Assembly: GCF_963853765.1 (NCBI RefSeq)
Contig: NC_088855.1
Location: 40,300,001 to 40,364,000, forward strand
DNA from: Magallana gigas
Taxonomy: Eukaryota
Length of the DNA: 64,000 nt
Direction of reading: 5' to 3'
The notes under the pieces are model-generated. The model searched no databases and was not told the origin of the DNA. It worked only from the letters and a program-made list of their open reading frames with translations. Positions 4,018 through 20,817 of this stretch are shown piece after piece. The position numbers were made by a program, and so were the translations under genes. How positions within the stretch are numbered: the first letter of the stretch is position 1; each line of letters opens with the position of its first letter.

Positions 4018-6006
4018 ATGAAGAGTTTGGTGTATTTGATTTGTTGGCTGACACTCTATTTATGGCCAGTCAAGTCGGCGGCCCCCACAGGATGTACCTA
4101 CAGTACGGACACTGGGTCACGTGGTTTGTATACCTGTGACTTCACGGTGATGACACTCCCTGCTACCTACAGTACCTTCACCAGCCCGATCCCCCAGCGT
4201 CTTAAAATACGGAACATCAACGGGAATCTACCAGTCTCGAGCCCAACGAAGACTTTCAACGGATTCGGGAGTTACGCCACAGGAAGCCATGACAAAGACT
4301 TCACGTCGTACCTGGAGCTCAGATGTTCCTCGGGTAACCCCTCGGGTCAGGCCCTTATATCCCTGGGGACGTTCTCCCAAATGTCCTACCTGGAGGAACT
4401 GTATATCAAAGATTGCAGGCTCACAAACGGCCTACCGGAATTTGTCTTTTCCGATCTTCAGAACTTACACATCCTTGTTATTGAGGGAGGGTCCATTGCT
4501 GCAACCGCTGCAGACAGCATGGCTAATTTCAACATTAGCATCTCTTCAACTTTGTCTGAGTCTAGCGGAATCCTAAATTTTACAAATGTTGCCATAACGG
4601 GAGGAACCTTTACGACCGGCTTTTTCTACCCTCTGACCACGGTAAACACGATTATTCTCGAAAATAATGGGCTAACCTCACTGGAATTGTCGACATTTTC
4701 CCAGAACACCCAACTTCGAAGACTCATCATCCGGGACAACCCCATCACCGTCATTCCTAACAACCTGTTTTCCGGATTAGACGCGTTGGAGTACGTGGAA
4801 CTGAACGACCTGAGTCTGACGTGTTCTTGTGATAACGTCTGGTTCGTCAAACATTTCGTCGACCACAACATCACTCTTGGCGAGGGAGCGGTCTGTTCTT
4901 TGAGTACTAATGGTAAGAAATGGCGACAACCAAAGAATCTGTCTAGGAAAAATATACTGCATATTTAATAGCTTAGAATGAAACCATATACACCAGCCTT
5001 ATCATAAACTGAAAATTCAAGGTATAAAAGCTTTGTCATAAGAATGCAATTAAAGTTTTAAAAATACATTCCTCAATATAAGATACGTAATCGCAATATA
5101 AAGGGCGTTTTATATAATTTATGTCATTTTTGTGATAACCTTCAAAGTGACTTTCTATTTGTTACAGTTAAAAACGCCCAGAAGTACTACTATGAAAATT
5201 GTGTGACCTATGATATCTGCGATGGTGTCCCAGGTAAGACAGCGAAAAGCACTATCCTAACCTTATAAACTGGGTATCCTTTATATAACGGGTCCGTTAA
5301 CTCCCCCATTACCATAAATATATTGGCATGAAAACGGCTCGTACATTCACGTTATCTCTATATTAGTTTTTGTAAGCTTTCTTTTGGTTAGCCTGATAGG
5401 CACACGACATCATTTTTGTCAGTGAAGGGGTCAGACAAAGAGTGGAATGGGCAATTGGGCCCGTTAACTCCTTCGCTCTCAAAAATAACTTGTTTTGTCT
5501 TAAAACGTATCGTAAAGTCACGGTATCTCTATATTAGTTTTTATGTACATGTAAGTTTTGTTTGGTTAGCCTGATAGGCACACAACATCATTTTTCTCAG
5601 TGGAGGGGTCAGACAAAGAGTGGAAATGGCAATTGGTTCGTACGTGTTGGTAATTGCAAGTCAGTTGATAAGCAAAGAATGGATGATGTACATATTGTAA
5701 CACACCTATTACCTGGATCATGATTTACTATGTGAAGCGTACAATCTCTTTGCAGGCATCAAAATCCAAGGCAGGTGTACCCAATGGTATAAGATCGTCT
5801 TTGTCTTCTTACTTATCCTCGCTATAATCCTCACCATTGTGACTCTTGTTCTCCTCATCCACACCCGGAGGAAACTGATGTCACAACATGACAAACTCCG
5901 AGCCAAGCAGACGGAGAAATGGTCCAAAATCCAGCAAATACTGAACACCCAGACGGTCAGCAAGCAGAGGCCCCCCGCCGCCACCCTACCGCCCAAGGGC
6001 GTGTAG
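4018..6006 (+). CDS. LRR single-pass membrane protein, paralog 1 (403 aa)
   Basis: Exons 4018-4912, 5168-5233, 5756-6006; phase-1 GT-AG introns; frame continuous. Signal peptide, LxxLxLxxN repeats (LEELYIKDC, VNTIILENN, LRRLIIRDN), LRRCT LTCSCDNVWF, TM IVFVFLLILAIILTIVTLVLLI, tail ending PPKGV*. Confidence 0.88.
5352..5637. repeat. Two ~110-bp direct repeats in intron 2 of LRR paralog 1
   Basis: TATCTCTATATTAGTTTT...TGGTTAGCCTGATAGGCACAC.ACATCATTTT...GGGGTCAGACAAAGAGTGGAA...GCAATTGG occurs at ~5352-5458 and ~5524-5637. Confidence 0.85.
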
Positions 6007-6537
6007 CGCTGACCGTTCCAGTGTTACATCAGTGACCACCACTTATGGTGTACCACCCTTTGTACTGATGATACTAGCAATATGATATTCCATAGGAGAA
6101 CACATTTGGATATCAAATGAATTCAATTTCTTAAATATTTACGGGACAATATCACTGTGTTCTATCAGAATAAGAAATAATACCAGTAATAAATTTCTCC
6201 TTGTATGAGTAATTCCCTTTTCAATGGGATACAGTACCTCAAAAGTATGAAGCAACACTATGTTGATTATTTACTTGACATAAAGTATCAAGGGTGTTAA
6301 CTATTGCCAATGAAATGCATGTGTGCTGGATTGTTATGTTAATTATTTGAATAAATCTTGTATAAACTAAGCATGCTTGATTTTGTTGTTTCTTTCAGAA
6401 AGAAATACATTTAGATTTGTTTTCCGTTACAAAGTTTTCAAGATAGCAGTAACAACATTTTGAGTTTTCCCAAAAGACATAAAGTCCACACCGTCTATTA
6501 ATATCATAATAGTACACAATCCGTAAGTTAGCGAATA

Positions 6538-6684
6538 NNNNNNNNNNNNNNNNNNNNNNNNNNNNNNNNNNNNNNNNNNNNNNNNNNNNNNNNNNNNNNN
6601 NNNNNNNNNNNNNNNNNNNNNNNNNNNNNNNNNNNNNNNNNNNNNNNNNNNNNNNNNNNNNNNNNNNNNNNNNNNNNNNNNNNN
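6538..6684. other. Assembly gap (N)
   Basis: Run of n. Confidence 1.
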
Positions 6685-18117: not shown

Positions 18118-18397
18118 GGTTGTATGGGCCACCTCCATATTGTGTCGTACTTCCTATCGAAATAAGAAATAAAATCATATGTATAATCTCATAATTATTT
18201 TCTTTCTCAAAATTTGTAACAGTATAGCGAAGTGGACTTCGAACTCATACGATTATGCGAGTCACGAGTTCGAATTACGATTCCAAGGGCTTTTATAATT
18301 TGTATCCTTAAAAACAAGCAGCTTTTGGTCAAATTGGTGAAAGTATTTTGATTATAGTCTATTTTTATCCACATTAATATCGACAGGTGTCCCATAC
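18118..18397 (+). mobile_element. Old non-autonomous TIR element containing a decayed tRNA-like segment
   Basis: 5' GGTTGTATGGGCCACC and 3' GGTGTCCCATAC form an imperfect TIR. Internal GTCACGAGTTCGAATT (B-box-like). Aligns by eye to 21310-21540. Confidence 0.55.
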
Positions 18398-19361
18398 TGG
18401 TCCCCTTTGTTGATGCATACATAGTGCATCTCGCTTTATCTACATATTGTAGTAAAAAGGAAGATAATCTACATGTATGTATATTAGTAATTAACACAAG
18501 AATGAACCCCAAGCATTAACCTACCATTAGACGATGAAATGAATTTGTTCTCTTTATCTAAACCTTTATACTTTGAGTCATTTCTCGTTCATTTAAATGG
18601 CATATATTTTTTCTCAACAAATAATATGGTCCCAGATTAACTTTATTTTTAATATCTAAGGTCATTAAGCGATATGAAAGCTCTAAAGTAGGTCAACTAA
18701 ATGGGGCGACGTTTGCTTATATTTTGTTTATTTGCATGGATACTTATCCCAAAAGAATGTACATTGTAAATGACCACTTACATATACGACACGTAAAGTT
18801 CGTGTTTAGTAATCCACTTCAGATTTTTAAAGGACGAATGGTTAAAAAAAAATAACCACCATCGTAGAAATCGTATTAACAGAATAAGTATTTTTGTGAA
18901 ATCTGTTTTCAAAAACTTTAAGATTTTTGTTAAATTAAAATACTTTTTGAAAGAAATCTTGAAACGCAATTTGAAGAAAAAACGTATAGCAAGGACATTT
19001 CATTTTAAACGAAGCTTCATATTTTTCTTCTACACGTGTATTCAACTAAAGATAAAAAAAAATTAACATTCATCAGTGTGTCGGCTCATAATCATCGAAC
19101 AAAGAGGACGAAACGTCATTATATTTTCAATCCGCTTACATTTATCCGCACAAATCGTGTTCCATTTTTAAGAAATTAAATCAATAAGAGTTTCAAACTT
19201 TTAAACGTGTTTTACCGTCGCATTATTTAAGGTTTTTACGGATCATTGAGCGCCCGAACATTACAGGACTACATAGGTAGTTCGACCGTTATTTGGAGGA
19301 GATAAAAGTATCTCCAAATGAAAACTTTTTTTTAGAAAAACAGTGACATCAGATTGAAAAA

Positions 19362-20817
19362 ATGTCTCTACGATTTTTGGTCGTAGTTTTGGCTATGTGT
19401 TACAGCGTGTATGGAAATCCTCAGGGTTGTTCTTACGATTCCACGGAACTCCTCCACACGTGTAATGCTCGAGCCTGGTCCTTACCGCTGGCCTTTGGAA
19501 CCTTCTCTCCTCAGCCACAAAGAATTCTACTACGTGAAGTGGATGGAGAACTCCCAAACGGCTCACCAAGCGGTCCAACCTTTTCTGGATTCTCCTCCAT
19601 CAACACGGGAACGTTTGATTCCAACTATGCCCCAGAACTGATCATTAGGTGTACCTCTAATGGCCAGTTAATCATCACCCAGGCCGCTTTCACTGACATG
19701 GGATGGGTAGAGGAGTTGACGATAGAAGACTGCGACATTCTCTCTCTTCCTGTTCAAGTCTTTCAAAATTTCGGAAACATTAACCGTTTTGCCATCATTG
19801 GCGGGTCCATTGATGCGATGGTAGGAGATAGCTTTACTGGGATGAATGTCGAAAAAATGACCACGGTGCCTGATCCTAGAGGGGAGTTTATTATCCGGAA
19901 CAGCCGACTTGTATCAGGAGGTTTTGCTTTTGGCGCCCTTTTCTCGCAGGCAAACGCAACCCGCGTCATCATCGAAAATGCCAATCTGAAATCCATCCAG
20001 ACCGATATGTTCTATGCCCTACAGAAGATGACCTATCTGTCTCTGAGTAACAATCCCTATACTTACCTACCCACAGATCTGTTCAAGGGAATCAACTCGT
20101 TGACCACGGTGGACTTATACGGCATTTCCTGGGCGTGCACTTGTACAAACATCTGGCCACCTACGTGGTTGGGAAGCAACAACATCACCATGAACGGAGA
20201 TGCTGTATGCGGCAGCCCAACAGCGTATGAAAGTAAGTTCAGGTTTTCTACTGAAAGCGTGAAATGGTTCAAAATGTTATTTATTCTTATATAAATATAT
20301 GTATAAAAACAACGCCATCTTTTCTTCAGATGTAAAAATGTCCTATTATGAAAAAGAACAGTGTCCTCAACAAGATGTTTGCGCAAAAGCCGGACAAACA
20401 GGTAATAAACTATACAAAATCATCTTCAAATTTTTTTATTTTCTAAATTCCTGATAAACATGCTCACAGCAAAAAGAATACAGACATCGGGGACGATAAA
20501 ACCCTCTTTGTCTATAGACCAATACTAGTAAGCATCAGATGTCCCTTTTACAGTAAATGACATTGTCCTCTGTCTATCATCCAGGTTTCGTCGTGGGAAG
20601 CGTGTGTGTGACCATTCTGGACGTGGTCAACTACGCCCTACTGTTCACTACCTTCGTCCTCTCCCTCGTGGCCCTTGGGCTGGTCATCCACACCAAGAGA
20701 CAAGTAGGTAGCGCCAAGGACTCCAAACAGAAAGGCAAACCCGCCGCCAAAGGTTCCGCGATCCGGCGCTCCAGTGCCAGCTGGAACAAAGTCACCGACG
20801 CCCAAAGCCAGGGCTAG
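19362..20817 (+). CDS. LRR single-pass membrane protein, paralog 5 (391 aa)
   Basis: Exons 19362-20232, 20330-20401 (72 nt), 20585-20817. Signal peptide; LRRs; LRRCT WACTCTNIWP; TM YALLFTTFVLSLVALGLVI; tail RRSSASWNKV. Confidence 0.9.

Follow-up and report, generated by a model that had tools for sequence, protein, structure and literature searches.

Extracellular leucine-rich repeat (LRR) proteins are held at the membrane in different ways and vary in size. The Nogo receptor (RTN4R) is anchored by glycosylphosphatidylinositol (GPI). The LRRC26 family has six LRRs and a length of about 330 residues, and the ectodomain of Toll-like receptors (TLRs) contains about 20 or more LRRs. We describe here an unnamed family of extracellular-LRR type I membrane proteins, a class that is itself well known, encoded by clustered genes of the oyster Magallana gigas. 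Five members, g1 to g5, lie in a stretch of 64,000 nucleotides (contig NC_088855.1, positions 40,300,001 to 40,364,000), referred to as the window. Its edge cuts the array, and two more members, gA and gB, are located 2–5 kb upstream of window base 1 (locus L001). An earlier note on this DNA, made from the letters alone, had recognized a five-gene array; the five genes of the window stand, and the cluster as a whole contains seven.

The seven genes probably encode a stable set of binding proteins, each paralogue with a specificity of its own and all with a common partner inside the cell or in the membrane, rather than a fast-evolving immune repertoire. Members are already present in RefSeq as gene models labelled 'uncharacterized'. 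No publication on these genes was found in the literature, either by topic or by gene and protein identifier, and a survey of bivalve TLRs does not treat TIR-less LRR proteins with a transmembrane (TM) helix.

Domain architecture and relation to known LRR proteins

The family members are predicted to be type I membrane proteins of about 400 residues, consisting of a signal peptide, an N-cap with one disulfide, eight LRRs, a cysteine-rich LRRCT, a TM helix and a basic tail. The signal peptide, seen as a hydrophobic N terminus, the capped LRR block and the single TM helix place them among the extracellular-LRR type I membrane proteins. A P-x-G-C...C N-cap, an invariant Q(R) on LRR1, ten ectodomain cysteines and a phase-1 mini-exon within LRRCT are the marks of the bivalve family; the mini-exon is found in oyster, scallop and mussel, and a tail motif in most lineages, not all. 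The N-cap and LRR1 features are invariant columns in three family alignments, and the ten cysteines are conserved in all seven oyster genes. The N-cap opens with P-x-G-C in g1, g2, g4 and g5 and with PATC in g3, in line with the four P-x-G-C caps reported earlier. The tail, previously put at 40–55 residues behind an LRRCT and one TM helix, measures 43–54 residues in the window genes and 43–59 residues in the family.

Pfam searches of the ectodomain exons returned LRR_8, LRR_4 and a near-threshold LRR_5, and three full-length members matched the same LRR families and no other. The five TM/tail exons gave nothing above the cut-off. Pfam detected neither a TIR or kinase domain nor a death, Ig or FN3 domain in the ectodomain exons, the TM/tail exons or the three full-length members, which agrees with the architecture without TIR, kinase or Ig domain proposed from the letters. 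Weak Pfam matches below threshold in the TM exons, including WBP-1, FtsL and GRP, were dismissed as noise caused by the TM helix or the sequence composition.

A structure was predicted with AlphaFold2 for the Saccostrea orthologue of g4 from an alignment of 15 sequences, with a mean pLDDT of 81.7. From N to C terminus, the model displays a two-strand N-cap, eight LRR strands, the LRRCT, a short hairpin stalk and a long helix that comprises the TM segment and the tail. The LRR strands are spaced by 33, 27, 23, 32, 25, 24 and 24 residues. The N-terminal half of the LRR block is therefore atypical, whereas the C-terminal half is built of canonical 24-residue repeats. The seven to eight partly atypical LRRs counted earlier correspond to these eight strands and their irregular N-terminal half.

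Profiles of the family matched PDB sequences of LRRTM2, LRRC15, TLR3, TLR13 and designed LRR proteins through summed repeats. The best-matching stretch always consisted of the canonical C-terminal LRRs and the LRRCT. Foldseek retrieved the Nogo receptor, LRTM2 and LRTM1, Slit D2 and D3, FLRT, GPV, LRRC15 and LRRC26, at 14–26% identity and E ~1e-7 to 1e-8. The ESM Atlas yielded only generic arthropod and chordate clusters of extracellular-LRR proteins and no specific family. Since sequence and fold matches elsewhere are to generic LRRs only, the earlier judgement that no named family can be assigned still holds.

The top whole-length fold matches in AlphaFold/Swiss-Prot are the vertebrate proteins LRTM1 and LRTM2 (E 2.5e-8). 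Like the oyster proteins, they contain an N-cap, a short LRR block, an LRRCT, one TM helix and a short tail, within 345–370 residues. However, the identity is 14–16%, the TM-score is about 0.4 and there is no match at the sequence level. In addition, neither LRTM1 nor LRTM2 was seen to carry the N-terminal module or the tail motif that characterize the bivalve family. The top match among solved structures is RTN4R (1ozn, E 7e-8, TM-score 0.47/0.64, 15–16% identity), whose LRR domain has a similar number of repeats and capped ends. In contrast to the Nogo receptor family, every bivalve member possesses a TM helix and a basic tail instead of a GPI anchor.

The LRR domains of Slit superpose on the C-terminal half of the model with a root mean square deviation of 2–3 Å over about 180 residues, at 23–26% identity. 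Slit, FLRT, SLITRK, LINGO, LRRC15 and GPV carry additional LRR blocks or domains of the FN3, Ig or EGF type, none of which Pfam detected in the bivalve family. The FN3 domain, second LRR block or Ig domain that marks FLRT, SLITRK and LINGO proteins is missing, and only one LRR block is present. These proteins are sources of the automatic NCBI names of members, which number nine or more and conflict with one another: TLR13, SLITRK2-like, FLRT1-like, PLA2-inhibitor-like, LINGO, RTN4RL2, GPV-like, LRRC70-like and LRRC15.

The BK channel gamma subunits LRRC26/52/55/38 also combine LRRs with a single TM pass and a basic cluster next to the membrane. The bivalve proteins might likewise be auxiliary subunits of ion channels or other multi-pass proteins, as LRRC26/52/55/38 are on BK or Slo3, with the TM helix and basic juxtamembrane stretch docking on the partner and the LRR domain modulating it. 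The two architectures are equal, the Slo1-LRRC26 structure is among the fold matches, and in the bivalve family different orders agree in the TM helix and the basic region beside it, often more closely than in the ectodomain. However, the Slo1-LRRC26 structure ranks 39th (19% identity, TM-score 0.38/0.57), no better than dozens of other LRR proteins. The LRRC26 family is absent from the sequence matches of the profile searches, no sequence-level link was found, and the bivalve family differs in LRR number and length (eight LRRs and about 400 residues). A role as channel subunits thus appears quite improbable.

Another candidate function is that of TIR-less innate pattern-recognition co-receptors, whose LRR ectodomain would bind patterns of microbial origin while signalling would be left to a second membrane protein, one with a TIR domain. 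Hydra HyLRR, with its TIR partner, and vertebrate RP105/CD180 offer the precedent, and both lack a TIR domain, as the bivalve family does. Bivalves expand immune receptor families, one orthologue is automatically named TLR13, and a conserved TM helix and tail would suit a membrane partner. The profile matches reach the C-terminal LRRs and LRRCT of TLR3 and TLR13, but this likeness is limited to generic LRRs and comes from summed repeats. The bivalve proteins also differ from TLRs in the absence of a TIR domain (Pfam) and in a far shorter ectodomain of eight LRRs. The evolutionary history of the genes, described below, bears further on this alternative.

Conservation of the family across bivalves

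Six-frame searches of the whole genome (564 Mb, 29 contigs) with g4, g1 and g5 returned the same seven loci each time and nothing else at the family level. The next matches had E values of 1e-8 or weaker and covered the last LRRs and the LRRCT only. The seven clustered genes are the whole family in this oyster genome.

The related oyster Saccostrea cucullata carries seven genes on one contig in the same order and orientation, one on the minus strand followed by six on the plus strand. All seven pairs are 1:1 orthologues, each with a tree support of 100/100. Their identity is 71–91% in the ectodomain and 74–89% in the TM helix and tail. The nonsynonymous divergence (dN) amounts to 0.06–0.20 and is low throughout, in each of the seven genes and in either exon type. 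The synonymous divergence (dS) is saturated (>1.2 or undefined), and the dN/dS ratio omega is bounded only, at most ~0.13 where dS is computable (10 of 14 exon comparisons). These comparisons show purifying selection on all seven genes. The gA orthologue of C. virginica, 405 residues long, aligns without gaps at 86% identity.

Profile searches identified full-length members in oysters (Saccostrea, Ostrea, Magallana and Crassostrea), scallops (Pecten, Mizuhopecten, Ylistrum and Argopecten), mussels (Mytilus species), the ark clam Tegillarca, the pearl oyster Pinctada and the heterodont clam Mactra. Members are thus present in six bivalve orders, and the full-length members among the matches listed are only bivalve. 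Below them, scores fall to generic LRR proteins with partial coverage. The exhaustive profile search was dominated by giant multi-LRR proteins that score through summed repeats, and only single full-length stretches were used.

Mizuhopecten and Mytilus trossulus contain co-oriented arrays, both with a mini-exon of 66–69 nt. In the tree, mussel and scallop members fall within the g5 clade (support 98/97), g3 and g4 form an oyster-only pair, and the remaining lineages form a polytomy. The membership of the g5 clade and the shared arrays imply that the array, the exon layout and at least two of the lineages arose before the pteriomorph orders split several hundred million years ago. On these comparisons, the cluster and its mini-exon structure are older than the split between oysters, scallops and mussels. 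The array had earlier been described as old and maintained, and the 1:1 orthology, shared order, purifying selection and spread over six orders support that description. The synteny comparison suggested at the time finds the seven-gene layout in Saccostrea and arrays in scallop and mussel.

Three genes of the Mizuhopecten yessoensis array were seen (L005 686-940, 10001-12096 and 21532-22098), of which the downstream-most belongs to the g5 clade. Since the g5 clade comes last in the oyster array and among these three scallop genes, gene order may be conserved across orders. In Mactra antiquata, model P0150 (562 residues) contains one complete member with a TM helix, apparently fused to a second ectodomain. 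This fusion model suggests tandem copies in the heterodont clam too.

These results argue against pattern-recognition co-receptors. The stable copy number of seven, the 1:1 orthology and the conserved order, together with a low omega and no excess variability of the concave face, contrast with bivalve immune receptors, which typically expand within single lineages. The cluster contains no TIR gene. An arms-race repertoire is disfavoured by the stable copy number, and innate co-receptors of the HyLRR or RP105/CD180 kind are, in our estimate, unlikely.

The TM helix and tail share a motif. The TM helix has a common L-S-x-[VI]-A-L-G pattern. The tail motif comprises a K/R-rich juxtamembrane stretch, S-W-x-K-V-Q-[ED]-A, K-R with a glycine run, QKPP and a C-terminal G-W-[VI]. 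It is present in oyster g3 and g4, in scallops, ark clam, pearl oyster and one mussel lineage, and partially in g1, g2 and gB. The tail had been described as free of TIR, kinase and Ig domains, which agrees with Pfam; it is not featureless, however, as the motif is conserved across orders. The identity of the TM helix and tail exceeds that of the ectodomain between scallop and ark clam (67% vs 46%), g3 and ark clam (50% vs 36%), and g3 and scallop (49% vs 37%). Across orders, the TM helix and tail are often more conserved than the ectodomain. The g2 tail contains eight glycine codons (10151-10174), and shorter glycine runs occur at the same place in gB, scallop and pearl oyster. The run accordingly belongs to the ancestral tail motif and is no random microsatellite.

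Variability mapping of the concave face, an earlier suggestion, was carried out on the AlphaFold2 model. Exposed concave-strand positions are 75% identical between orthologues, vs 76% for other exposed positions, and 22% identical between paralogues. Within each orthologue pair, the strands of LRR1–4 hardly vary.

The reading we favour is that of a stable set of binding proteins, each paralogue with its own specificity, and a shared partner. Each paralogue would show an LRR surface of its own, conserved among orthologues and different among paralogues, and would probably bind a distinct, stable and probably endogenous extracellular ligand. Signalling or anchoring would be mediated by a partner that recognizes the common TM helix and tail motif. 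Lacking any catalytic or adaptor domain themselves, the proteins would act as co-receptors, adhesion molecules or auxiliary subunits and not as autonomous signalling receptors.

Several points weigh against this proposal. The ligand and the partner are postulated. Transcript evidence covers three of the seven genes, g3, g4 and gB. Some mussel members and the g5 clade have a weak tail motif or have lost it, largely so in the g5 clade, and in g1 the same applies to part of the motif. Concave and other exposed positions do not differ significantly (n=24 positions). Finally, two homology searches used a word prefilter and the exhaustive one comprised the best 150 matches, so that distant non-bivalve relatives are possible.

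Gene models, transcripts and other features of the window

A long open reading frame (ORF) of about 300 residues begins at each exon 1 start of g1 to g5, all on the plus strand, and an open segment of 80–100 residues with a hydrophobic helix is found 0.3–0.9 kb downstream of each of the five ORFs. GT-AG combinations were enumerated and kept if they gave good splice sites and a consistent protein; for g5, a single GT-AG model fits. Each of the resulting models contains three exons and two phase-1 introns, with canonical splice sites and open reading frames (Table 1). The products of g1 to g5 have 403, 398, 391, 398 and 391 residues, respectively. Successive gene starts are 3.2–4.8 kb apart. Pairwise protein identity is 26–32%, with the exception of g3/g4 (43%). 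The models thus reproduce the reading made from the letters: five co-oriented intact genes of 391–403 residues, exactly the expected middle exons of 66–72 nt, a spacing of about 3–5 kb and a strongly diverged sequence.

The identical exon layout also claimed there applies to g1 to g5, but not to the upstream gB. Exon 1 of gB includes the mini-exon, with no intron 1 between them. The Saccostrea gB orthologue has a two-exon layout as well, and intron 1 was either lost or never present. The gA and gB genes are arranged head to head with 870 bp between them.

Table 1. Features of the oyster cluster. Positions are those of the window unless marked L001, the upstream locus.
Feature	Position	Strand	Evidence
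gA, 405 residues, three-exon layout as g1 to g5	L001 6165-5292, 5143-5078, 4874-4597	-	
gB, 405 residues, two exons	L001 7038-7965, 8108-8397	+	
g1 exon 1: signal peptide, N-cap, LRRs, start of LRRCT	4018..4912	+	ORF and splice model
g1 exon 2, 66 nt: end of LRRCT, two conserved cysteines	5168..5233	+	splice model
g1 exon 3: juxtamembrane cysteine, TM 5794-5856, 49-residue tail, stop	5756..6006	+	splice model
Assembly gap, intergenic g1/g2	6538..6684	.	only N run inside the array
g2 exon 1	8810..9683	+	ORF and splice model
g2 exon 2, 66 nt	9783..9848	+	splice model
g2 exon 3: TM 9998-10060, 54-residue tail, Gly8 run, C-terminal GWV	9969..10225	+	
g3 exon 1	12049..12913	+	joint 12913/13026 in contigs of 3 runs
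g3 exon 2, 66 nt	13026..13091	+	both joints in transcript contigs
g3 exon 3: TM 13471-13533, 47-residue tail, full conserved motif	13433..13677	+	joint 13091/13433
g4 exon 1	15283..16150	+	joint 16150/16263 in transcript contigs
g4 exon 2, 66 nt	16263..16328	+	transcript contigs
g4 exon 3: TM 16499-16561, 52-residue tail	16458..16720	+	joint 16328/16458
g5 exon 1	19362..20232	+	splice model
g5 exon 2, 72 nt	20330..20401	+	splice model
g5 exon 3: TM 20623-20685, 43-residue tail	20585..20817	+	splice model

Spliced transcripts of g3 and g4 are present in Logan contigs from three runs of three studies, at exactly the modelled joints. The four joints (Table 1) are all of the GT..AG type, and joint 13091/13433 settles the acceptor of g3 exon 3. 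The transcript contigs span 12039-13854 for g3 and 15245-17211 for g4, with zero contig coverage of the stretch between the two genes. For gB, a Logan contig of 1,328 bp from SRR24489168 encodes the 405-residue product. It aligns to L001 7016-7966 and 8106-8485, with one splice and no ectodomain intron. In the 1% of a raw polyA RNA run that was sampled, no reads matched, a share too small to bear on expression.

The possibility that the copies are decaying or mis-modelled, and do not form a working gene family, is extremely remote on this evidence. The frames are open, the splice sites are canonical, three genes have spliced transcripts, all seven are subject to purifying selection, and RefSeq proteins of related oysters agree with the models in length and without gaps. 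At 99.5% identity and without gaps, the g1 model matches a 403-residue RefSeq protein of Crassostrea angulata, and g3 is 100% identical to a Magallana gigas UniProt entry across 300 residues. A pseudogene or modelling error is ruled out by the spliced transcripts for g3, g4 and gB and is unlikely for the remaining four genes.

The assembly gap between g1 and g2 touches no exon, as it sits between the g1 stop (6006) and the g2 ATG (8810) and both coding sequences align end to end with their orthologues. A simple repeat rich in T, (TTTG/TTTTG)n, follows just past the gap at 7340-7410, and only its composition keeps all three frames open. Downstream of the cluster, two further assembly gaps (25271-25432 and 27865-27994) lie in AT-rich sequence (GC 0.28–0.31) that has no long ORFs. 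An intronless ORF of 468 residues, single-copy in the genome, occupies 55017-56423 on the minus strand and is a putative gene. It matches no Pfam family and has no recognizable relatives in the Atlas, where the best score is 0.79 and the neighbours are only faintly Plavaka-transposase-like.

Meaning for bivalve LRR proteins

Lineage-specific families of extracellular-LRR membrane proteins are common in animals, and a family of this kind is in itself unsurprising. The merit of the present one lies in its ancient conserved synteny and its conserved cytoplasmic motif, and it is experimentally tractable. The label 'receptor' and any immune role remain presumptive for these proteins. As one family appears under contradictory automatic names, counts of bivalve 'immune receptors' or 'TLRs' that are based on names can be misled.

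The seven oyster orthologue groups provide a clean set for expression and knock-down work, and the defined cytoplasmic motif can be used as bait for the partner. We suggest, tentatively and with more doubt than confidence, that the TM/tail module may be a previously undescribed docking motif that couples bivalve-specific LRR ectodomains to one signalling or trafficking partner. If true, this would constitute a new TIR-independent LRR receptor system of molluscs.

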